From Bacillus subtilis subsp. subtilis str. 168 (lineage in GTDB: Bacteria > Bacillota > Bacilli > Bacillales > Bacillaceae): a DNA stretch of 64,000 nucleotides. The DNA lies in NCBI RefSeq assembly GCF_000009045.1, contig NC_000964.3, positions 1,054,001 to 1,118,000 on the forward strand. The letters run 5' to 3'. A model generated the notes under the pieces. The model saw only the letters and a list, made by a program, of their open reading frames with translations. It was not told the origin of the DNA and searched no databases. Numbering within the stretch: position 1 is the stretch's first letter; every line of letters begins with the position of its first letter. The position numbers and the translations under genes were made by a program. Shown in pieces: positions 2,355-28,804 of the stretch.

Positions 2355-2383
2355 TTGTCATCGGAAAGGAAAACTGAGATAAT
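2355..2383 (+). promoter_or_regulatory. SigA promoter of the sRNA
   Basis: TTGTCA-N17-GATAAT with TG at the extended -10 position. Confidence 0.7.
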
Positions 2384-2388
2384 AACAT

Positions 2389-2402
2389 TGAAAGCGCCTA
2401 CA
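2389..2402 (+). promoter_or_regulatory. cre site (CcpA) over the transcription start
   Basis: TGAAAGCGCCTACA vs TGWAARCGYTWNCA. Confidence 0.7.
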
Positions 2403-2618
2403 CTTACCTATTTCAAATGGATACGGTCGCATATCATGCCGTTATATAGAGGGGATAAGCAACAGAGAGTAAGTGTTCGGAGCGCATCATTGGTCAAACA
2501 AGGGGTTCCTGATACATGATTTTTCGTAAATCGAAATAACGATATTAGGGAGAATGGCTGCTTCGATCGTATCCTATCAACAAGCCATACATAAAGTCTG
2601 CTGAGCCAGGCTTTTTTT
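2390..2618 (+). ncRNA. rosA: RosA RNA sponge for RoxS/FsrA (about 229 nt)
   Basis: Promoter + cre at 5' end; three G-rich tracts (AGAGGGG 2448, AGGGG 2501, AGGGAGA 2547); terminator AAGTCTG-CTGAGC-CAGGCTT-T5 at 3' end; no plus-strand ORF; length and features fit what I recall of RosA (S345). Confidence 0.75.
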
Positions 2619-2635
2619 GCTTTAAGAAAAGGTTG

Positions 2636-17937: not shown

Positions 17938-18041
17938 GGGAGATTCCCCCTCTCTCTGAACTGTCCCATATTACATTACCAAATATTTATTAAAAAAGAT
18001 AGAATGCAAATTGAAAAATCGCCACCAGCACCAGGGTTTGA

Positions 18042-18560
18042 CTACTTTTCAACAAGAATATCCAAGCCGTCAGCTTCCTGATCAATAAAAGCGGTTTTCG
18101 GTGCTTTTATCAGCTTGAGAGCCAGCAGGAAATCAGGCAGACAGTAGCCGGCGTGAATGCCCGAGATCATGCAAAAATAATGAGCGTGATTCGGAAATGC
18201 CAGTGCTGCGTAAAACAATACCGGTGTAATCAGCAAGAACGGGCTGACGAGTGAAATCAGCATTGTTGTTTTTGGTATACGTTTCCATGTGCGCATGCGC
18301 AATATGTAAAACTTTTTTTCTATTTTTCTTTTTTTGCAGATGATTGGCAGGACATGGATGACTTTATGTACAAATAAAATAACGACGAGCAAACCGCCGA
18401 ATAAAGATACATATTCATCGCTTAAGCTTGTGCCAGGCCGCAGCAGCTCAAAAGCTAAAAAGGTAGATATAAAAACCAAAATCATAAAACATACAGCAGT
18501 TAATATTATGCGAACGGCGCCATAATCCTTCATGAGATTTATGGTCTTCCAGCAATTCAT
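18042..18560 (-). CDS. yhaJ: DUF3267-like membrane protein (zincin-like motif degenerate)
   Basis: GGAAGGA RBS before MNCWKTINL; 172 aa, several TMs, HKVIH. Confidence 0.75.
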
Positions 18561-18767
18561 CAAAGTCATCCTTCCATACATCTTGAATAGAATCTCAAAA
18601 TAATTTACTCCTCCCAAGAGAAAAAATCAATGCTTTTTTAAGAAAAAATATCATCCGGCAGGTATTTTTTTGAAACAAGCAAACAAACTGCGAAATATGG
18701 GGTTAGAACTTTCTTCTCAGTGAATTATCAGCTAAAATAAGATTAAAGATAGAAAGAAGTGGTGTGG

Positions 18768-19109
18768 ATGGATTCGATGGATCATCGCATTGAGCGATTA
18801 GAATATTACATACAATTATTAGTGAAAACAGTAGATATGGACAGGTACCCCTTCTATGCGCTTCTCATTGATAAAGGGCTGAGCAAGGAAGAAGGGGAAG
18901 CGGTTATGAGGATATGCGACGAATTGTCGGAAGAGCTGGCAACACAAAAAGCGCAAGGATTTGTAACCTTTGATAAGCTCCTTGCGCTTTTTGCCGGACA
19001 GCTGAATGAAAAATTAGATGTTCATGAAACAATTTTTGCCCTGTATGAGCAGGGGCTTTATCAAGAGCTGATGGAAGTCTTTATCGACATCATGAAGCAT
19101 TTTGATTAA
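18768..19109 (+). CDS. yhaI: YhaI (DUF1878) family protein
   Basis: [18 protein letters not shown]...; 113 aa. Confidence 0.8.
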
Positions 19110-19717
19110 CTGTTTACAGGTTCGAGCTCTTCAGCCGGTTCATCCGCCGCACTGTCCTTTGCTTTTTTCTTCAATTTTCCGTTTACGCTTTCAAAGTCAT
19201 TGTCAATATTGGTGAGTGACGTTTCGAAAATTTCCATAAAATCATCGCCGTAGATATGGCGTATCATACACATCATTTCTGCCACTTCAGGAAATTTTCC
19301 GAATAAATGATATAAAGGCTGTGACCCTTTAAAAACAGCGTTGCGTGTCGGATCAAATTCCTCAAGCAAGCTCCAGAATACCTCGGTACCTTCCTCAGTC
19401 AATTGGACATATGTGTTCCGTTTATCATTCAGCCGTTTGGAGAACCTTAAATATCCCCGTTCTTCCAGCTTTTTTGAAAAGTTGAATGCGGTTGATACGT
19501 GCATGACCCCGAATTTCGCGATTTCAGAAATGGAAGCTCCATTCAATTGATACGCAATCCATAAAATATGATGCTCATTAATATTCAGGTCATACGGTTT
19601 GAGCCATTGCTGCCAATCCTTCTCGATCGATTTCCAAAGAGCCTTGCTAAGCTGAGCCATTTTCTGGGTGAAAACCAGAGCTTCTTTCACATCATAGGGC
19701 GGTTCCACTCGATTCAT
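19106..19717 (-). CDS. scoC: MarR-family transition-state regulator ScoC/Hpr
   Basis: 203 aa; [16 protein letters not shown] winged HTH. Confidence 0.95.
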
Positions 19718-19894
19718 TACGTCACCTGCTTCTCTTTTTCTTTTTCTCTATTATGCCAATAAAATAAAGATTAATAAAGATGAAAATGTAAGAATTTTTT
19801 AATAAATTCACAAACCATTGCGACGAAAGGGTTTTTCGGCCAAAAAAAATACGGGTCCAATTTTGGCCCGCATTTTTTTCTTTTGAATAGGATA

Positions 19895-20251
19895 TTAGTT
19901 TTGTAAGGTTTTCTCCAGCTGTCTGATTTTCTCTTCGATATCGGCAATTTCTTTTTGCAGATCCTGCTGGTGAGGCTTGATCTCTTCCTGCCATTTTTTA
20001 ATTGATGTTTGGAGCTCGCCGCCCACGTCTTTAATAACATCCGTGCTTTCTTTTGCCGCTTTGATCAGCTGGTCTTTTAATGCAAGCCCGTCTGACTTTA
20101 AGCGTTTGATTGTTTCTTCAAAAGAATCATAATTGGTTTTCATTTTTTCACGCAGCTGCTTTCCTGAGGAAGGTGCAGTAAGAAGAACCGCTGCTCCTCC
20201 GATGATGCCGCCTACGAATAGTCCTGTTAATAGAGAACGTCCGCTCGCCAT
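19895..20251 (-). CDS. yhaH: YtxH-domain protein
   Basis: GLFVGGIIGGAAVLLTAPSSGKQLR YtxH signature. Confidence 0.85.
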   Translation of the reverse strand: MASGRSLLTGLFVGGIIGGAAVLLTAPSSGKQLREKMKTNYDSFEETIKRLKSDGLALKDQLIKAAKESTDVIKDVGGELQTSIKKWQEEIKPHQQDLQKEIADIEEKIRQLEKTLQN

Positions 20252-20380
20252 TACAATCACCCCGTCTTTTTCTTCAAAATAGGATTCATTCAGCATTTTT
20301 CATTTTTGTTGAAAGCCTGAACTTCTATACATAGCTTGCTTTATTTTAGCATATTTTTTAAGTGAAAAGGAGGGAGAAGG

Positions 20381-20572
20381 TTGTCTGTCTTTTTGATTGT
20401 ATTATCCTGCATCACCCTTGCCTTCGCTTCAGGCGCTGTTTACTATATCAAACTTCTCAGCCAGGCTGCTTCTTATCCGCCCAAGAGGGTTATCCGGCAG
20501 AAAGCGCTTGTTTGTTCAACCGGAACCGCCTTTACACTATGTCTTATCTTTTTCACAAAACTCCTCGCTTAA
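20381..20572 (+). CDS. yhzF: Small two-TM membrane protein
   Basis: AAGGAGGGAG RBS + TTG; 63 aa. Confidence 0.7.
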   Translation: MSVFLIVLSCITLAFASGAVYYIKLLSQAASYPPKRVIRQKALVCSTGTAFTLCLIFFTKLLA

Positions 20573-20645
20573 AACATGCTGACATGCTGCGGGCGCTCTG
20601 TTCAAAAAAACCTCTCCCGGAAGCGGAAGAGGTTTTGTGTGACAA

Positions 20646-21164
20646 TTATTTAGCAGCTTCCATAAAGCTTGAACGCCTTAAAATGGTTTGCACAATCGGA
20701 TAAATAATGATCATTGAGATTGTATTCAGCACAGCGGCCGGCAGAACAACAGCCGCGAACAATGCGGCGAAACCGCCCGGTAAACCGACGATCAATAAAG
20801 CTGACGATAGAAACACAATTCCTGATAAGATGGTCCCGATCACTGTCAGCACAGCGGCTGCACCTGTTTTCCGGCTCTTTCTGAACAAGAGAAACAGGGA
20901 GAAGAACAGAAACGCTGATACGGGTTTATCAATGATGTTAGGGATCTGTCCGGCTGGAAACGCGGTTGTAAGCGCGGAAATGATTCCGGTCACGATCCCG
21001 ATGACGAGTACATTTTGCACCCGCGGGAACAGCAGAATGCCCATGAACATCATGATCAGCATCATATCTGGTTTCATGCCGCCTAAAAAGGGCGGAATAA
21101 TGGAATGAAGCGCTGCGCCGATTGCGGCAAACAGAGCCATAATGACTAACTCTTTTGTTTTCAT
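20646..21164 (-). CDS. trpP: Tryptophan transporter (ECF S-component type)
   Basis: 172 aa hydrophobic; MKPDMMLIMMF; TRAP repeats over the RBS. Confidence 0.9.
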   Translation of the reverse strand: MKTKELVIMALFAAIGAALHSIIPPFLGGMKPDMMLIMMFMGILLFPRVQNVLVIGIVTGIISALTTAFPAGQIPNIIDKPVSAFLFFSLFLLFRKSRKTGAAAVLTVIGTILSGIVFLSSALLIVGLPGGFAALFAAVVLPAAVLNTISMIIIYPIVQTILRRSSFMEAAK

Positions 21165-21166
21165 AA

Positions 21167-21198
21167 CTATGCTCTCCTCTGCTAAGCTTTTTGCCCTC
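21167..21198 (-). promoter_or_regulatory. TRAP-binding triplet repeats overlapping the trpP SD
   Basis: AAG-cu-UAG-ca-GAG-ga-GAG-ca-UAG at exact 5-nt periodicity, plus an upstream GAG. Confidence 0.85.
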
Positions 21199-21288
21199 CA
21201 ATAATATGCTCATCATTTATTGCGAAGGCTTTACAGAATGTGTTATGCAAACAGTATACCAAACGGACGGTTTGCATAGCCAGACTTT

Positions 21289-22368
21289 TTACTCATTTTC
21301 CTGCTGGAATTTCTTCATGAACGCAGCTAATTTTTCACAGTCTTCGAGAGAGACCGCGTTATAAATAGAAGCGCGGCAGCCTCCCACCGAACGGTGTCCG
21401 CCAAGGCCGATCATCTTCGCATCTTTTGCTTTCTGAACGAATGTTTTCGTTAATTCGTCATCCCGAAGCGTGAATGTGACATTCATGCGTGAGCGGCTGT
21501 CTTTTCTGGCATGTCCTTTATAGAAGCCGTTGCTTTCATCAATACAGCTGTAGAGAACCTGCGCTTTTTGTTCATTGCGCTGTTCAACAGCTTCCACACC
21601 GCCGTTTTCCTTGAGCCATTCCAGAACGAGGCTCAGCATATAAATCGCAAATGTCGGCGGAGTGTTGTAGAGTGAATCCGCTTTGACATGCGTGGAATAT
21701 TTCAAGATTTTTGGGACGTTCGCATTTTCATTTTGCAGCCAGCTTTTTTTCATGATGACTACAGTCACGCCGGAAGGGCCGAGGTTCTTTTGGGCGCCTC
21801 CGTAGATCACATCAAATTTGGACACATCGATTTTTCTGCTTAAAATATCGCTGGACATGTCGGCTACGAGCGGAATTGGAGAATTCGGAAACTCCTGCCA
21901 CTGAGTGCCGAAAATTGTATTGTTGGATGTGATATGTAAATATGCGCCGTCTTTTACATCCGTAAGGTCAACCTCTGGAATATAACTGTAATTGTCTGTT
22001 TCACTTGTAGCGGTGATAGACGTGTTCCCGAACAGTTTCGTTTCTGCCAGTGCTTTTTCAGACCAAGCGCCGGTCATCACAAAATGTGCGGTTTTTTCAG
22101 GTGTTAAAAAGTTCATCGGAAGCATTGAGAATTGAAGGCTTGCCCCGCCTTGAAGAAACAAGATATCGTAATCTTCCGGAATGCCCATCAGTTCGATTAA
22201 GAGGCTTTTCGCTTTTTGGTGCACCGCTTCATACTCTTTGCTGCGGTGGGAAAGCTCCATAACAGACATGCCGGATTCGTTAAAATCAATAAATTCTTTC
22301 TGTGCTTTTTGCAGAACTTCCAGTGGCAGCGCTGCAGGACCTGCGTTAAAATTCGTTGTACGTTCCAT
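21289..22368 (-). CDS. serC: Phosphoserine aminotransferase
   Basis: NFNAGPAALP, MELSHRS, GAQKNLGPSG, GHRSVGGCRASIYN. Confidence 0.97.
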   Translation of the reverse strand: MERTTNFNAGPAALPLEVLQKAQKEFIDFNESGMSVMELSHRSKEYEAVHQKAKSLLIELMGIPEDYDILFLQGGASLQFSMLPMNFLTPEKTAHFVMTGAWSEKALAETKLFGNTSITATSETDNYSYIPEVDLTDVKDGAYLHITSNNTIFGTQWQEFPNSPIPLVADMSSDILSRKIDVSKFDVIYGGAQKNLGPSGVTVVIMKKSWLQNENANVPKILKYSTHVKADSLYNTPPTFAIYMLSLVLEWLKENGGVEAVEQRNEQKAQVLYSCIDESNGFYKGHARKDSRSRMNVTFTLRDDELTKTFVQKAKDAKMIGLGGHRSVGGCRASIYNAVSLEDCEKLAAFMKKFQQENE

Positions 22369-22514
22369 TATGATCTCTCCCTGTTTTCCACGTTAATGTA
22401 TAAAATAATACAATTATCCTATCACAAAAATTCAGTTTTTTGATAAAAAATTAGAATTATCAAAAGAAATTGACGGATGTTTGCGAAATGTTCACAAAAT
22501 AAAATAACCTCATC

Positions 22515-22952
22515 TTATGATGAGGCCAGGCGTTTTGCGATAGAGGAAGAGATGTTCTGCAGATCCTCCGGTTTATAATCATCAGCATGCGTTTTCCAAA
22601 CCGCTCCGAATCCATCTCCTTTTCCGTAGCGAGGGATAATATGCATATGGTAGTGGAACACAGATTGTCCAGCTTTTTCGCCGTTATTGTTCAGCGTATT
22701 TAAGCCGATCGGTTCAAATTCATCCCGGATAGCGCGGGCGATTTTTGGAACAGCATGGAAATATTGTTTTGCTAATTCATCTGTAAATTCATATACATTC
22801 TCAATATGTGTTTTCGGAATGACAAGCGTATGGCCTTTTGTCACTTGGCTGATATCAAGAAAGGCAAGTACATGTTCATCTTCATACACCTTCGCTGATG
22901 GAATGTCGCCGGCAATAATTTTACAAAAGATACAATTCTCTGCACAATGCAT
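22515..22952 (-). CDS. hit: HIT-family nucleotide hydrolase
   Basis: CIFCKII and HYHMH histidine triad. Confidence 0.93.
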   Translation of the reverse strand: MHCAENCIFCKIIAGDIPSAKVYEDEHVLAFLDISQVTKGHTLVIPKTHIENVYEFTDELAKQYFHAVPKIARAIRDEFEPIGLNTLNNNGEKAGQSVFHYHMHIIPRYGKGDGFGAVWKTHADDYKPEDLQNISSSIAKRLASS

Positions 22953-23012
22953 GAGGGTTCCTCCTTATGAAATTGTTTAGTATGTATACATTCATCGTAC
23001 CACAGAAATGCA

Positions 23013-23051
23013 GAAAATAGAAAACAGGATGAACGGCGAGCGTTCACCCTG
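23013..23051 (-). terminator. Minus-strand intrinsic terminator upstream of hit with no annotated gene feeding it
   Basis: CAGGGUGAACG-CUCGC-CGUUCAUCCUG-UUUUCUAUUUU; 11-bp stem with one G.U pair (A.C mismatch if read on plus). Confidence 0.7.
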
Positions 23052-23313
23052 AATGCAGAGGAAGAGCTTATATGAAGAAAATGTGTTATGCCTTTGGTAA
23101 GCACCTCATTTGTCAATAAAATGAAGACTTGTTTAATGCCTAACGATTCCTGCGATAAACACCTCATTTGACAATTTGCTTCATACATGAAGAATTCATC
23201 AATTCAGTGAAGAGAAATGGTTTGAGCATTGGACATGTTTATTTTCTATCCAACTGTTTCTAAGACGTCTTTGACAAACACCTCATTTTTCAGTTGATAT
23301 GCTTTTCCTCTAC
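23018..23313 (-). ncRNA. Putative sRNA (about 300 nt) with three SD-like repeats
   Basis: Inferred from the terminator, a candidate SigG/SigF-like promoter (TCATA-N18-CATCATA, 23349-23320) and triple repeats; ends approximate. Confidence 0.45.
23092..23294. repeat. Three imperfect 26-nt direct repeats (23092-23117, 23150-23175, 23269-23294)
   Basis: ctttggtaagCACCTCATTTgtcaat / ctgcgataaaCACCTCATTTgacaat / ctttgacaaaCACCTCATTTttcagt; 18 of 26 positions invariant. Confidence 0.85.
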
Positions 23314-23381
23314 AACTTTTATGATGTCCAGAACCCTGTCTCTTTATGACAGCAAATTCATCATTTGTTAAAAGGGAATTG

Positions 23382-23411
23382 TTTCAAATCAGGCCTTGTT
23401 TTTGGTACTAT
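23382..23411 (+). promoter_or_regulatory. SigA-type promoter of ecsABC
   Basis: TTTCAA-N18-TACTAT with extended TG. Confidence 0.55.
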
Positions 23412-23439
23412 GAAGAAAAACACTATAAGGGGAGAAACT

Positions 23440-24183
23440 ATGTCTCTGCTATCGGTAAAAGACTTGACCGGCGGATATACAAGGAATCCGGTTTTAAAAA
23501 ACGTATCATTCACCCTTGAACCGAATCAAATTGTCGGCTTAATCGGGCTGAATGGTGCTGGTAAAAGTACAACAATCAGACACATCATCGGGCTGATGGA
23601 CCCGCATAAAGGTTCAATCGAATTAAACGGTAAAACGTTTGCTGAGGATCCGGAAGGCTACCGTTCACAATTTACCTATATACCTGAAACACCTGTTTTA
23701 TACGAAGAATTGACGCTGATGGAGCATCTTGAACTAACAGCCATGGCATATGGACTGTCAAAAGAAACGATGGAGAAAAGGCTGCCTCCGCTACTAAAGG
23801 AATTCCGAATGGAAAAGAGGCTGAAGTGGTTCCCGGCCCATTTTTCTAAAGGAATGAAGCAGAAGGTTATGATTATGTGCGCATTTTTGGCAGAGCCTGC
23901 GCTCTACATTATTGATGAGCCTTTTCTAGGGCTTGATCCGCTTGCCATTAACGCGCTGCTTGAACGGATGAATGAAGCGAAAAAAGGCGGGGCGAGCGTG
24001 CTGATGTCAACACACATTTTGGCAACGGCAGAACGCTATTGCGATTCGTTTATTATTTTACATAACGGCGAGGTGCGGGCGCGCGGCACGCTGTCAGAGC
24101 TCAGAGAGCAGTTTGGAATGAAGGACGCGGCGCTGGACGATTTGTATCTTGAGCTTACAAAGGAAGACGCTGGCCATGAATAA
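23440..24183 (+). CDS. ecsA: ABC transporter ATP-binding protein EcsA
   Basis: GLNGAGKST, FSKGM, IIDEPFLGLD. Confidence 0.95.
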   Translation: MSLLSVKDLTGGYTRNPVLKNVSFTLEPNQIVGLIGLNGAGKSTTIRHIIGLMDPHKGSIELNGKTFAEDPEGYRSQFTYIPETPVLYEELTLMEHLELTAMAYGLSKETMEKRLPPLLKEFRMEKRLKWFPAHFSKGMKQKVMIMCAFLAEPALYIIDEPFLGLDPLAINALLERMNEAKKGGASVLMSTHILATAERYCDSFIILHNGEVRARGTLSELREQFGMKDAALDDLYLELTKEDAGHE

Positions 24184-25402
24184 TATGCTTGATATTTGGC
24201 AGTCGCGGCTGCAGGAGCATATCAAAGAAACAAGAACATACATGAAATATATGCTCAACGATCACCTCGTCATTGTTTTGATTTTTTTTCTAGCGGGCGC
24301 TGCAAGCTGGTACAGCAAATGGATACGGGACATTCCCGCTCACTTTCCGTCCTTTTGGGTGATGGCCGTGCTGTTTTCGCTCGTATTGACAAGCTCTTAT
24401 GTGCGAACGCTTTTGAAGGAGGCTGACCTTGTTTTCTTATTGCCTCTTGAAGCAAAAATGGAGCCTTACTTGAAGCAGGCGTTTGTCTACAGCTATGTGT
24501 CTCAGCTGTTTCCGCTGATTGCGCTGAGCATCGTTGCGATGCCGCTTTATTTCGCAGTCACTCCGGGAGCTTCGCTCGTATCGTATGCCGCGGTCTTTGT
24601 CCAACTGTTGCTGCTGAAAGCGTGGAATCAGGTAATGGAATGGCGAACGACTTTCCAAAACGACCGCAGCATGAAACGGATGGACGTCATCATTCGCTTT
24701 GCGGCGAATACACTCGTTCTTTATTTTGTTTTCCAATCTGTTTATATGTATGCGCTTCTCGTCTATGTCATTATGGCTGTTCTTTATCTGTATATGTCTT
24801 CCGCAGCAAAACGGAAAACATTTAAATGGGAGAGCCATATTGAGTCCGAATTGAGACGAAAGCAGCGTTTCTATCGGATTGCCAACCTGTTTACTGATGT
24901 GCCGCATTTGCGAAAGCAAGCCAAACGCAGAGCTTATCTCGACTTTTTGCTGCGGCTTGTGCCGTTTGAACAGCGCAAAACATTTGCCTATATGTTCACC
25001 CGCGCCTTTTTGCGTTCGAGCGATTATTTGGGCATTCTTGTCAGATTAACGATCGTTTTCGCGCTGATCATTATGTATGTCTCAGCCAGCCCGCTGATTG
25101 CCGCGGTTTTGACTGTGTTTGCCATTTTCATTACGGGCATTCAGCTTCTGCCGCTCTTCGGTCACTTTGACCATCTGGCGCTTCAAGAGCTGTACCCTGT
25201 GCAAAAAGAAACAAAGCTGAAAAGCTATTTCTCTCTATTAAAAACTGCACTTAGTATTCAAGCGCTGCTGATGTCTGTTGCATCTGCCTATGCAGCCGGC
25301 TTGACCGGTTTTCTGTACGCGCTGATCGGTTCTGCCGTTCTGATTTTTGTTGTTTTGCCTGCTTATATGACGACCAGGCTGAAAAAGCACGGAAAGCTGT
25401 GA
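24176..25402 (+). CDS. ecsB: ABC transporter permease EcsB
   Basis: Overlaps ecsA; LKEADLVFLLP; polytopic. Confidence 0.92.
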   Translation: MNNMLDIWQSRLQEHIKETRTYMKYMLNDHLVIVLIFFLAGAASWYSKWIRDIPAHFPSFWVMAVLFSLVLTSSYVRTLLKEADLVFLLPLEAKMEPYLKQAFVYSYVSQLFPLIALSIVAMPLYFAVTPGASLVSYAAVFVQLLLLKAWNQVMEWRTTFQNDRSMKRMDVIIRFAANTLVLYFVFQSVYMYALLVYVIMAVLYLYMSSAAKRKTFKWESHIESELRRKQRFYRIANLFTDVPHLRKQAKRRAYLDFLLRLVPFEQRKTFAYMFTRAFLRSSDYLGILVRLTIVFALIIMYVSASPLIAAVLTVFAIFITGIQLLPLFGHFDHLALQELYPVQKETKLKSYFSLLKTALSIQALLMSVASAYAAGLTGFLYALIGSAVLIFVVLPAYMTTRLKKHGKL

Positions 25403-25421
25403 ACTGAAAAGAGGTAATCAA

Positions 25422-26132
25422 ATGACAGATAATCAGCTGCTGATGCAGGAAGCTTTGGAATGGAAAATGCATTTTTTGCGAAAGGATTCCATGTTTGAAC
25501 GCTTTTCGAAGCGTGTCCAGACGAAGGTGAATGAACGGATTCCTGAAAAAATCCATACGGTCGTCACCGAGAGTGTGAAAAAAATGGTAGAAGCGACAAT
25601 GGCCGGCTCTAATATCATCACCTATAAAAAGGATACAAGTGCACTGTCGCTCAGTGAAAAAAACGAATTGGCGAAAAAAACGATTGTTTCTTATCAAAAA
25701 GTGGCAGCTGCTGAGGGAGTCGGCACCGGAGCGGGCGGCATTTTTTTAAGCATTGCTGATTTTCCGCTGCTGCTTTCAATTAAGATGAAGTGTTTATTTA
25801 CCTTGTCTTCCATTTACGGCTTTGATGTCAAGGATGCACAAGAAAGGATATTTTTGCTGCTCGTGTTTCAGCTTGCGTTTTCGAGTGATGATGGCCGTAA
25901 GTCGCTTTTTTCTGTCATCGAAAATTGGGAGACGGAGAAAAAGAGCATCGACTGGAGAGTGTTCCAGCAGGAATATCGCGATTATATCGACGTCGTGAAG
26001 CTTTTTCAGCTTTTGCCGGGCGTAGGAGCGGCAGTCGGCGGAATTGCCAATTATAAGCTGCTTGCTCAGCTTGGAGAAACGGCAAGACATGTTTTTCATC
26101 TGAGGATATTAAAGGAAACAGCCGGAGAATAA
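25422..26132 (+). CDS. ecsC: EcsC family protein
   Basis: GAGGT RBS; EGVGTGAGG, KLFQLLPGVGA. Confidence 0.9.
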   Translation: MTDNQLLMQEALEWKMHFLRKDSMFERFSKRVQTKVNERIPEKIHTVVTESVKKMVEATMAGSNIITYKKDTSALSLSEKNELAKKTIVSYQKVAAAEGVGTGAGGIFLSIADFPLLLSIKMKCLFTLSSIYGFDVKDAQERIFLLLVFQLAFSSDDGRKSLFSVIENWETEKKSIDWRVFQQEYRDYIDVVKLFQLLPGVGAAVGGIANYKLLAQLGETARHVFHLRILKETAGE

Positions 26133-26151
26133 ACACTCCGGCTGTTTTTTT
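26116..26151. terminator. Terminator ecsC/sndC
   Basis: AAACAGCCGGAG...CTCCGGCTGTTT + T run. Confidence 0.8.
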
Positions 26152-27340
26152 ATAGCTGATGATAGGTGATCGCAGCGCCGGCAAGGACCTTGGCCGCTGT
26201 CAGCATGGCTTTTTCGTTGATATCAAATTTCGGATGGTGGTGGGAATAGACTCGCTCTGGCTGTTCGGGAGCGGCGCCTGTAAAGAAAAAAGTGCCCTTC
26301 ACGTTTTGTAAGTAATAAGCAAAATCCTCGCCGCCCATTTGTGGTTCACCGTCAATGACCTGCTGAACGCCCTCGGTATTCTTTGCGGTGCTCACCAAGT
26401 GGTTCGTTTCTGCAGGATGGTTCACAACCGCTGGATAACCCTGTTCATAGGTGTACTCATAGGACGCGCCGTGCATGCTGCATATTCCTTTTACAACCGC
26501 TTCAATTTCTTTCTCCAGAATGTCCCGGACATTTTCATCAAAAGAACGCGCTGTGCCGATGAGTACTGCTTGGTCTGCGATGACATTAAACGGATTGTCG
26601 GCGATGAAGGAGCCTGTCGAAATGACGGCGGATTGAATCGGATTGACTTTGCGGCTGACAATGTGCTGCAAAGAGGAAACGATTTGCGAACCGATTAGGA
26701 CGGCGTCTTTAGTATCATGCGGATGAGCGCCGTGGCCGCCCTTTCCGAAGACTTTAATCGTAAATCGGTCTGCCGCCGCCATTACGGCGCCGGGGCGGCA
26801 GAGAATAGTTCCGAGCGGCTCAGTTGCCCAAAGATGAGTGCCGAATATCACATCCGTGTTTTCGAGACATCCGTCATCAATCATTGGCTTTGCGCCTCCA
26901 GGATAATATTCTTCTGCATGCTGGTGGATCATCACAAATGTTCCCTTCAGTTCATGTCTGTTTTGGTGAAGGACCTTGGCCACTGCGAGAAGAGCTGCGG
27001 TGTGGCCGTCGTGGCCGCATGCATGCATGACACCAGGCACTTTGGAGGCGTAAGGGACATCTTTTTCATCTTGAATGGGGAGAGCGTCAAAGTCGGCCCT
27101 CAAAGCGACTGTAGGGCCGGGTTCGCTTCCTTCTATATTTGCTAAAACCCCTCTACCGCCAACGTTTGTGCGGATTGGGACTCCTAACGATTCATAATAG
27201 GAAGCAATAAATGCGGCGGTTTTTTCTTCTTGAAATGAGAGCTCAGGATACATATGAAAATGGCGCCTGATCTCAACCATTTCTTCAAAACAGCCGTCGA
27301 GCTGTTTGTTTATCTCTTTCTGCAGTGTGGATATGGACAA
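26150..27340 (-). CDS. sndC: M20D amidohydrolase (N-acyl amino acid deacylase)
   Basis: RRHFHMYPELS, LRADFDALP, MHACGHDGH, HAEE, GGEDF; also called yhaA. Confidence 0.85.
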   Translation of the reverse strand: MSISTLQKEINKQLDGCFEEMVEIRRHFHMYPELSFQEEKTAAFIASYYESLGVPIRTNVGGRGVLANIEGSEPGPTVALRADFDALPIQDEKDVPYASKVPGVMHACGHDGHTAALLAVAKVLHQNRHELKGTFVMIHQHAEEYYPGGAKPMIDDGCLENTDVIFGTHLWATEPLGTILCRPGAVMAAADRFTIKVFGKGGHGAHPHDTKDAVLIGSQIVSSLQHIVSRKVNPIQSAVISTGSFIADNPFNVIADQAVLIGTARSFDENVRDILEKEIEAVVKGICSMHGASYEYTYEQGYPAVVNHPAETNHLVSTAKNTEGVQQVIDGEPQMGGEDFAYYLQNVKGTFFFTGAAPEQPERVYSHHHPKFDINEKAMLTAAKVLAGAAITYHQL

Positions 27341-27412
27341 AGCCGCTTCCCCCTTTTCTATGCTTTTCCATGATTGTATAGAAAAAGTCTGAATATTTCA
27401 ACTCATGCTGTT

Positions 27413-28804
27413 TTAAAGCATCATCACAGCTGCGAGGGTTGTCACCAAAAGGCCAATCGCGACGGGAATGAAGTTTTTTCTGGCAAGCTCAAAAGGATCA
27501 ACTTTGCAAATGGCCGCGGCGGGAATCAAAGCCCATGGGACCAGTGTTCCTCCGCCCACCCAGATGGCAGAGATTTGTCCGAGCGCGGTCAGAATAGCGG
27601 GATCGGCATGGAGAGCGGACGAAAAGAGCTTTGCGATGGAGCCGGCGAGAGAAATGCCAGAAAATCCTGAGCCGTCAAGGCCTGTTATGGCTCCAGCGGC
27701 AGTTAATGCAGTGGCGGCAAGCTCCTTTGACATAGGCATCATATGGGATAAAGCAATGCCAAGATCGTTGACAATGCCGTGGGAACCTTTAGGGAGTGAA
27801 GTGCCCAGTATGCTTTCATAGCCTGAGTCGCCAAGATAAAAGAAAGCGGCAATCGGGATGACGGGGCCGAAAACCTTAAAACCGAACTTAAATCCGTCAA
27901 TAAAATAGCCGGTGATTTTTTCAAGCCCTTTATGCTTATACACGAAAAAATGAACGGTAAAGAGGATACAAATTGCAGACCCGCCAATTAACGCGGTTGC
28001 ATCATTTCCTTGTAGGTTAAACAAGAGCATGCAGGCGATATCTGCAAGAAAGGCAAGCGGAATCAAAAAAGCCAGTATGGACCGCAGGCGTTTTGGCAAG
28101 TACAGCGAGTTGTCTTGTTCGCCGGAAAGAACGGGGGAAAAAGAAGTGGGATGCTCCTGTTTTTTGCGTTCGCGCTGAATCATGATAAAGGCAGCAGTTG
28201 TTGTTGTCACACCCATAATCAGCACAAGCGGAATACTGGCCGAGACGACATCACCGACTGGAATGCCTGCTGCATCCGCAGTCAGCTTTGGCGCCGCCTG
28301 AATGACAAAGTCTCCTGACAGGGCAAAACCGTGTCCGAATAAGTTCATGGCCATGGCCGCGGCAAGAGGCGTCAAACCGGCACGTGCGGCTGCGGGGAGC
28401 AGGACGGCGCCGATCAAAGCGACACCCGGAGAAGGCCAGAAGAATAGAGAAATGGCGAACATCAGGCCTCCAATCAGCCAATAGGCAGTCACAGGCCCTC
28501 TCACAAGGCTTGCAAAGGGAGAAATCATCGCTTCATTTATCCCTGTTTTTGTTAACAAATCACTCATTGAAACGATAAAGCAAATGATGAAAATCGTGGG
28601 CAGCAGTTCGCCGGCCGCATAGATAAAGCTGTGGAATAAACTGCTGACAGAAGCTGAAAGTGAATGGCTGGCCCATAGCGATATGATAAAAATGCCGAAT
28701 AGAGAAATAAATGTCGTGTCTTTTCTCAGCAGCATAAATAGGATAATTGCACCGATAAAAAACACATACAGAACATGGACAGGCAAAATCCCGACTTCCA
28801 TCAT
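27413..28804 (-). CDS. yhfA: Uncharacterised polytopic membrane transporter
   Basis: 463 aa, about 12 TMs. Confidence 0.75.
   Translation of the reverse strand: MMEVGILPVHVLYVFFIGAIILFMLLRKDTTFISLFGIFIISLWASHSLSASVSSLFHSFIYAAGELLPTIFIICFIVSMSDLLTKTGINEAMISPFASLVRGPVTAYWLIGGLMFAISLFFWPSPGVALIGAVLLPAAARAGLTPLAAAMAMNLFGHGFALSGDFVIQAAPKLTADAAGIPVGDVVSASIPLVLIMGVTTTTAAFIMIQRERKKQEHPTSFSPVLSGEQDNSLYLPKRLRSILAFLIPLAFLADIACMLLFNLQGNDATALIGGSAICILFTVHFFVYKHKGLEKITGYFIDGFKFGFKVFGPVIPIAAFFYLGDSGYESILGTSLPKGSHGIVNDLGIALSHMMPMSKELAATALTAAGAITGLDGSGFSGISLAGSIAKLFSSALHADPAILTALGQISAIWVGGGTLVPWALIPAAAICKVDPFELARKNFIPVAIGLLVTTLAAVMML

Follow-up and report, generated by a model that had tools for sequence, protein, structure and literature searches.

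Three G-rich repeats located between hit and ecsA in Bacillus subtilis are carried by S357, also called ncr1670, the B. subtilis orthologue of the small RNA Bvs196: a non-coding RNA of about 298 nt encoded on the minus strand. It is very probable that these repeats are functional recognition modules of this forespore sRNA and that they act at the RNA level. The locus is not the undescribed system that an earlier reading of the DNA (the sequence-only reading) had taken it for, because S357, ncr1670 and Bvs196 are already present in the literature and Bvs196 has been studied experimentally as a forespore sRNA. The gene itself is therefore known, but the repeated module, its conservation throughout the family, its variable copy number and a second locus in Priestia appear to be undescribed in the searchable literature; a literature search for the sequence of the motif retrieved nothing but unrelated primers.

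Few forespore sRNAs have an established function; for S357/Bvs196, only two targets have been found in vitro and the phenotypes are modest. The conserved part of S357 is a repeated module which resembles a Shine-Dalgarno (SD) sequence and lacks a start codon. It offers a precise and easily mutable handle on the true partner of the RNA, and a sequence signature with which a family that has no Rfam model can be annotated.

The transcript between ecsA and hit

The window, that is, the whole stretch of 64,000 nucleotides that was analysed, includes a serC-hit-ecsA-ecsB region of the B. subtilis type, in which hit (22515-22952) is encoded by the minus strand and ecsA, from 23440 onwards, by the plus strand. 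The core CACCTCATTT (plus strand) is found at 23102-23111, 23160-23169 and 23279-23288, within 190 bp, and there is no fourth copy in the 64 kb. Dinucleotide shuffling of the window predicts 0.18 copies, and none of 100 shuffled sequences contains three or more. A repeat search delimits the same family as three 30-nt copies (23088-23117, 23146-23175 and 23265-23294) which are 77-80% identical to the reference copy. Read on the minus strand, the copies share (C/A)AAAUGAGGUG and continue with 12-13 related nucleotides (UUUGUCAAAGACG, UUUAUCGCAGGAA and CUUACCAAAGGCA). The three repeats that the sequence-only reading had noticed in this spacer are thus real. The only other match to the module matrix described below is a weak one, GGGATGAGGTGATCGCGACAAGCT at 52774-52797 on the plus strand (score 12.4), which is probably an ordinary SD sequence or a chance match.

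Irnov et al. placed ncr1670, which is the segment S357, on the minus strand of the hinT-ecsA spacer, with the strand pattern /-/-/+/. Dambach et al. found a 256-nt peak in the hinT-ecsA spacer that was enriched 2.77-fold by co-immunoprecipitation with Hfq, and the inactivation of hfq was reported to affect ncr1670. The orthologue from B. velezensis, Bvs196, has been studied by Xu et al. (2022, PMC9147052): it measures 294 nt by Northern blot and lies in a 490-bp hinT-ecsA spacer, it is expressed only in the forespore, with a dependence on sigmaF and sigmaG that was shown experimentally, and its deletion alters the resistance of the spores to heat, UV and formaldehyde. The region that these authors describe as pairing with the targets, nucleotides 74-131, lies between the first and the second repeats, outside the modules. 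The results, discussion and figure legends of that article mention neither the repeated module, nor its SD-like core, nor its occurrence outside Bacillus.

S357 and Bvs196 are the same gene: they share the hinT(hit)-ecsA spacer, the hit-sense strand, a length of about 294-300 nt, a promoter of the sigmaF/sigmaG type and an intrinsic terminator. In the window, about 298 nt separate the predicted 5' end from the terminator, to be compared with the published 294 nt (Bvs196, Northern blot) and 256 nt (co-immunoprecipitation peak). S357 is also homologous in sequence to the RNA of the B. velezensis group, as full-length alignments with the locus of B. siamensis (L008) and with a second locus (L009) show. 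The sigmaG-type -35 and -10 elements are conserved; the dependence on sigmaF and sigmaG has been demonstrated experimentally in B. velezensis only, and the assignment in B. subtilis rests on promoter clustering and on a thesis, both as cited in the literature. Since a promoter of the sigmaG/sigmaF type drives transcription up to a terminator located upstream of hit, S357 is probably made in the forespore. The sequence-only reading had also considered that the plus strand might be expressed, as an sRNA with three anti-SD seeds; this is unsupported, because promoter and terminator both lie on the minus strand, to which published work also assigns the RNA. The features of the transcript are the following.

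23320-23350, minus strand: sigmaG/sigmaF-type promoter (-35 GTCATA at 23350-23345, 18-nt spacer, -10 GGACATCATA at 23329-23320)
23016-23313, minus strand: predicted S357/ncr1670 transcript of about 298 nt, which contains the three repeats (from the positions of promoter and terminator)
23301-23313, minus strand: purine-rich 5' end GUAGAGGAAAAGC, the 5' arm of a closing helix (inverted repeat and fold)
23266-23289, minus strand: module M1, AAAAUGAGGUGUUUGUCAAAGACG, RNA nucleotides ~25-48, weight matrix score 33.5
23205-23220, minus strand: CU-rich central block CCAUUUCUCUUCACUG, with an invariant CACUG (alignment)
23147-23170, minus strand: module M2, CAAAUGAGGUGUUUAUCGCAGGAA, RNA nucleotides ~144-167, weight matrix score 32.0
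23119-23126, minus strand: internal anti-module CUUCAUUU, complementary to AAAUGAGG of M2 or M3
23089-23112, minus strand: module M3, CAAAUGAGGUGCUUACCAAAGGCA, RNA nucleotides ~202-225, weight matrix score 32.1
23055-23067, minus strand: CU-rich 3' arm of the closing helix, GCUCUUCCUCUGC (inverted repeat and fold)
23016-23051, minus strand: intrinsic terminator just upstream of hit (11-bp stem-loop at 23051-23025, followed by a U-run)

The predicted fold of the full-length RNA has an energy of -82 kcal/mol (z = -4.2 relative to shuffled sequences). Compensatory changes are seen in the alignment both in the closing helix, where AU pairs are replaced by GC pairs, and in the stem of the terminator.

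Two other elements were noticed in this region. Directly after the terminator, about 40 nt upstream of the ribosome binding site of hit, the sequence TGTGGTACGAT (22994-23004, minus strand) resembles an extended -10 element; it is kept as TGTGGTA(C/A)(G/T)AT in other Bacillus loci and is probably the promoter of hit itself. Within S357, a 21-codon ORF, MLKPFLFTELMNSSCMKQIVK (23164-23229, minus strand), ends at the UGA of the AUGAGG of M2. Its translation is improbable, since it lacks an SD sequence and the B. pumilus group has a different flanking sequence.

No Rfam family corresponds to S357: Rfam 15 gives no match at E <= 1 in the region 18000-28000 of the window, nor at E <= 0.1 in the corresponding part of six divergent loci. 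The identification of the locus as CsfG was considered and rejected, since CsfG is located between ylbG and ylbH. The naming in PMC9147052 is not uniform in this respect: the introduction equates Bvs196 with S357, and the discussion mentions "S547 (Bvs196 homolog)". As S547 is CsfG, the latter looks like a slip, which could mislead annotation.

The module and its distribution

Eighty loci were retrieved through the Hit protein, with one genome per species. In most of them, the exact 8-mer ATGAGGTG recurs upstream of hit and on its strand (214 occurrences overall), and the copies anchored on it were used to build a 24-nt weight matrix. With this matrix, 245 modules are detected in the 1.2-kb regions that precede hit (96 kb in total, hit strand), versus four weak matches in the remaining 908 kb, both strands included; in the window, only M1-M3 have high scores (32-33.5). 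The consensus of the module, about 24 nt in length, is RAAAUGRGGUGUYURUYAAAGAC. The segment AUGAGGUG is nearly invariant, its main variant being AUGGGGUG.

Modules are present in 76 of the 80 loci, in two to seven copies: two in 15 loci, three in 42, four in 14, five in 1 and seven in 4. They are common to Bacillus, Priestia, Metabacillus, Peribacillus, Neobacillus, Sutcliffiella, Rossellomorea and the Anoxybacillaceae. The four loci devoid of modules belong to Alteribacter, Anaerobacillus (two) and Salipaludibacillus, and no equivalent repeat exists in the three of them that were checked (L026, L063 and L080). A search for the module in viral contigs found nothing. All the modules of a locus have the same orientation, and their spacing ranges from 52 to more than 200 nt. 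The promoter block GCATA/GAATA-N17-18-GGnCATnnTAAT is conserved across genera upstream of the first module (63 of 76 loci with a crude pattern), which lies at a median distance of 35 nt downstream of the -10 element; the purine-rich 5' end downstream of the promoter is also conserved across the family, and a terminator separates the last module from hit in 71 of the 76 loci. The predicted lengths of the RNAs range from 289 to 661 nt.

The alignment of 14 Bacillus species shows that the modules are the best kept part of the RNA. Indeed, 17 of 23 columns are invariant in M1 and 18 of 23 in M2, the column identity of the two being 0.93, versus 0.69 for the rest of the RNA (22 of 164 columns invariant), and M1 and M2 are the longest invariant blocks besides the terminator. 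The repeats are therefore kept while their flanks diverge, which is the reverse of the pattern (flanks conserved, repeats lost) that the sequence-only reading had named as evidence against itself. The same reading had remarked that the copies differ 3' of the core by transitions, and this largely holds for the whole family, with 141 transitions and 22 transversions at positions 8-12; at positions -2 to 7, there are 47 transitions versus 2 transversions.

The RNAs of the Metabacillus type measure about 640 nt and carry seven modules in the order A-B-C-A-B-C-A (L031, L039, L040 and L079, at about 2190-2860). The presence of one promoter and one terminator indicates that each is a single RNA with an internal, tandemly repeated three-module unit. 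In Metabacillus, Priestia, Peribacillus, Rossellomorea and the Anoxybacillaceae, the sRNA also contains a second purine-rich repeat, AAGGGGAUGGUnnnnUUGMAY, which is absent from Bacillus sensu stricto; the GGGAUG of this repeat resembles a site of the CsrA type. Its positions are as follows.

L039, 2455-2480 and 2703-2728: second purine-rich repeat
L054, ~2570: second purine-rich repeat
L030, ~2636 and ~2776: second purine-rich repeat
L044, ~2812: second purine-rich repeat

The module is also found away from hit. Scanning metagenomes with the module pattern yielded 114 stretches, 47 of which have hit immediately downstream. In 34 others, which carry several modules, neither hit nor ecsA is present, and about 20 of the remaining matches, with a single module, look like chance occurrences in unrelated coding DNA. 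The 34 loci without hit contain a copy of the Priestia type, with the same 140/68/68 spacing and with its own sigmaF/G-like promoter and its own terminator, beside a cspB-like gene.

L095, 1990-2460, minus strand: Priestia-type csp-linked copy of the sRNA, four modules
L201, 1700-2030, minus strand: Priestia-type csp-linked copy of the sRNA, four modules

The csp-linked copy is present in one NCBI chromosome (L201) and missing from seven other genomes which encode an identical Csp (1 of 8). In a phylogenetic tree, the hit-linked copies form one supported clade amid more diverse copies without hit. The sRNA unit is therefore an autonomous gene, since a copy with its own promoter and terminator exists without hit or ecsA. 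The core of the fourth module is mutated to AUGAGUUG in L095. Some csp-linked loci (L123, L187 and L192) have a fifth module, which is situated 309 nt past the RNA with four modules and may be part of a further small gene.

What the modules may bind

The resemblance of the core to an SD sequence is genuine but limited. The predicted duplexes between the modules and the 3' tail of 16S rRNA, for which the textbook sequence was used, have energies of -9.3 to -11.1 kcal/mol, compared to -20.7 kcal/mol for the ideal site AAAGGAGGUGAUC. The best SD sequences of the 58 long ORFs of the window have a median of -11.7 kcal/mol with the same tail, and the pairing strength of the modules lies at about the best 2-3% of random 17-mers. 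The match is moderate, about as strong as an average SD sequence, and its description as nearly perfect (9 of 10 positions of the ideal SD) was overstated. In the 13-nt core AAAUGAGGUGUUU, 11 of 13 positions can pair with the 16S tail, GAGGUG:CACCUC being the stable part. Transitions account for the common variants at positions -2, -1, 3 and 10, and the changed bases would still pair with a U or a G of the 16S tail thanks to G-U wobble. As expected for a STAB-SD or a decoy of the 30S subunit, the GAGGUG able to pair with CACCUC is not accompanied by a start codon. The sequence-only reading was right on this point: none of the three copies in the window is followed by a start codon at about 5-12 nt with an ORF, and usable start codons are lacking for 217 of the 219 unique modules of the 76 related loci.

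The favored explanation, at somewhat less than even chance, is that the modules are multivalent SD mimics, to which 30S subunits or a CU-rich RNA resembling the anti-SD bind, and that S357 acts as a decoy or a sponge, or is protected in the manner of a STAB-SD. The modules would act at the RNA level, as start-less imitations of ribosome binding sites, and would be bound by a trans-acting partner that normally recognizes such sites, most likely the anti-SD of the 30S subunit or another CU-rich RNA. Binding would titrate this partner; it could also shield a long-lived spore RNA from 5'-to-3' decay. A decoy or a sponge would agree with the multivalent arrangement of the RNA, whose body is poor in G (12%) and whose modules are rich in it (29%). 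At least one module per RNA (M3, or alternatively M2) would be masked by the internal CUUCAUUU, M1 being free in the consensus structure. S357 would be linked to translational shutdown and to spore quality if the ribosome, or a factor with affinity for ribosome binding sites, proved to be the partner. A broader version of this proposal is speculative and rather unlikely: S357 would be the prototype of a family of forespore RNAs spread across the Bacillaceae, in which two to seven start-less SD mimics capture 30S subunits, or a factor recognizing ribosome binding sites, when the spore shuts down, the balance between masked and open modules tuning the capacity of capture. If true, these RNAs would form an RNA-based device to control or store the translation apparatus on entry into dormancy or upon germination.

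Several points stand against the SD mimics. The invariant U1 and U8 are mismatched with the 16S tail, and anti-SD pairing leaves the conserved 3' half of the module, UUUGUCAAAGAC, unexplained. The predicted accessibility of the core is low and its predicted pairing is only that of an average SD. Very high copy numbers of the RNA would be required to titrate ribosomes, which raises a problem of stoichiometry. In addition, the published targets of Bvs196 pair with nucleotides 74-131 according to PMC9147052, and not with the modules, and CsfG, the obvious CU-rich RNA of the forespore, has no specific complementarity to them.

The two mismatched uridines, the unexplained 3' half, the low accessibility and the stoichiometry favor the main rival, in which the modules are binding sites for a protein. 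S357 would then be a protein sponge similar to CsrB, or an assembly platform, in the forespore, and the resemblance to the SD would be incidental unless the protein also binds ribosome binding sites. This is a possibility that we consider tentatively, as less probable than the SD mimics. It would account for the conservation of about 20 nt as primary sequence, with no covariation supporting either local hairpin, for the invariance of U1 and U8 despite their inability to pair with 16S rRNA, and for a variable number of G-rich motifs in a G-poor RNA. Outside Bacillus, the conserved second motif AAGGGGAUGGU, rich in purines, looks like a CsrA site; this also agrees with the protein rival, as do the modest enrichment of ncr1670 with Hfq (2.77-fold) and the effect of hfq inactivation. 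On the other hand, this enrichment is low, and the known protein motifs do not fit: the core contains GGU and CsrA requires GGA. Hfq from B. subtilis prefers AG repeats, which also counts against a protein, and we know of no candidate RNA-binding protein in the forespore.

The modules could instead be engaged mainly within the RNA itself, by pairing with its own CU-rich segments, so as to build a scaffold or to auto-inhibit the seed that binds the ribosome binding sites of the targets. Candidate partners exist: the anti-module CUUCAUUU, the central seed and the 3' arm are all CU-rich, and the published target-binding region (PMC9147052) is the CU-rich centre. In the consensus structure, the core of M1 is unpaired and UGUUU/AGACR forms a small hairpin, the core of M2 pairs with a downstream CUUCAUU, and M3 forms a hairpin with the upstream CUUCAUUU. 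The latter hairpin is maintained by compensatory changes in the B. pumilus group, even though the module consensus is lost there, and compensation is also seen for one module of Parageobacillus. Anti-module motifs are mildly enriched (47 strict matches versus 26 expected, z = 3.2-4.3).

However, these 47 matches have to be set against 245 modules, that is, less than one strict anti-module for about 3.2 modules per RNA. Most modules are thus not consumed by intramolecular pairing, as they outnumber the internal complementary segments. The complementarity between the core and its immediate flanks does not exceed that of shuffled controls, which gives no indication that the core is masked locally. 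Within the 3' half of the module, no covariation was found for the hairpins 6-10/16-20 or 9-13/17-21, the paired fractions being those expected from the composition of the columns. A purely structural element would be expected to covary, rather than to remain invariant across genera while its partners diverge. The structural contexts of the modules also differ between genera, and thermodynamic folding gives the core an unpaired probability of 0.20-0.25, which predicts no special accessibility. An essentially intramolecular role is improbable.

By analogy with RosA and RoxS, S357 could be a sponge for the forespore sRNA CsfG, but this is very unlikely. The two RNAs share compartment and timing, the G-rich motifs of S357 would face the CU-rich loops of CsfG, and RosA, encoded in the same window, provides a precedent. 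To compare them, ylbG-ylbH loci were retrieved through CoaD, CsfG being the reverse strand of the Rfam family ylbH, RF00516. The CsfG sequences, those of B. siamensis and a relative of Bacillus sp. J37, were paired with S357 from the same or a closely related species (L081 with L008, L082 with L039). For the duplexes between modules and CsfG, a fraction of 0.32-0.78 of shuffled modules is at least as good, and the duplexes between the whole RNAs are no better than those of shuffled sequences, although the whole-RNA method yields long duplexes that are meaningless. CsfG contains no CACCUC. With CsfG as the sole partner compared, the complementarity to the seeds of a partner sRNA that characterizes RosA was thus not found, and the search for complementarity to known sRNAs that the sequence-only reading had suggested revealed, for CsfG, nothing beyond shuffled controls.

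DNA operator sites for ecsA or hit had also been mentioned as an alternative in the sequence-only reading; they could be, for instance, Spo0A-like boxes or sites of another transcription factor, controlling hit, ecsA or the promoter of the sRNA. The repeats do lie in a divergent intergenic region, and M1 contains TTTGTCAAA, which resembles the 0A box recognized by Spo0A (consensus TGNCGAA / TTTGTCRAA). This alternative is nevertheless very unlikely, since the modules are situated in a transcribed body, all between promoter and terminator and in one orientation, and differ widely in number and in spacing (52 to more than 200 nt), the B. pumilus group preserves the hairpin at the RNA level, and the whole unit exists autonomously at the csp locus, in the absence of hit and ecsA. 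The Spo0A box itself was rejected: TGTC[AG]AA is found in 16 of 131 unique modules and TGTCGAA in 1 of 131, and the invariant AUGAGGUG lies outside the box.

Finally, it is hardly credible that the cores are genuine ribosome binding sites of very small ORFs: their anti-SD pairing does equal that of an average gene, but ATG, GTG or TTG occurs 4-12 nt after GGUG in only 2 of 219 unique modules, versus 44% at random positions of the same regions, ATGAGGTGTTGA gives a stop codon in some copies, the variation has no 3-nt periodicity, and coding potential was rejected, as the copies preserve no reading frame and almost entirely lack start codons.

Comparison with known RNAs

S357 belongs with the regulatory sRNAs that contain multiple motifs. 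CsfG (S547) is a forespore sRNA which depends on sigmaF and sigmaG, as S357 probably does, and it is conserved in spore formers. It differs by its ylbG-ylbH locus, by motifs that are CU-rich instead of G-rich, and by the existence of an Rfam model (RF00516), which S357 lacks.

The STAB-SD of the cry3A leader from B. thuringiensis is a single, near-perfect SD without a start codon, which acts as a 5' stabilizer in an mRNA leader. S357 shares with it a start-less SD-like sequence which is able to pair with the 3' end of 16S rRNA, and the position of its first module near the 5' end. It differs in that two to seven copies of moderate strength, with a conserved extension, are carried by a non-coding RNA.

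Similarly, CsrB, RsmY and RsmZ are non-coding RNAs in which a short purine motif is present in many copies and in variable number. Their motifs are GGA sequences exposed in hairpin loops, which bind CsrA or RsmA. The core of S357 is GAGGUG or GGGGUG (hence GGU) and has no GGA, and it is not consistently presented in a hairpin loop. Repeated A(N)GGA motifs in hairpin loops are thus not found in the modules.

RosA (S345), which sponges RoxS and FsrA, resembles S357 in having several G-rich tracts that could capture C/U-rich partners. The short G-runs of RosA match known C-rich regions, whereas the unit of S357 is a conserved module of 13 to 24 nt. RosA itself can be located in the window: the intergenic stretch 2374-2620 (plus strand) contains the G-rich tracts AGAGGGGAUAAG, CAAGGGGUUCC and UUAGGGAGAAUGG, and a terminator-like hairpin followed by a T-run. 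This position matches the one published for ncr560/RosA, between yhaZ and yhaX, with a coordinate offset inferred from that of ncr1670.
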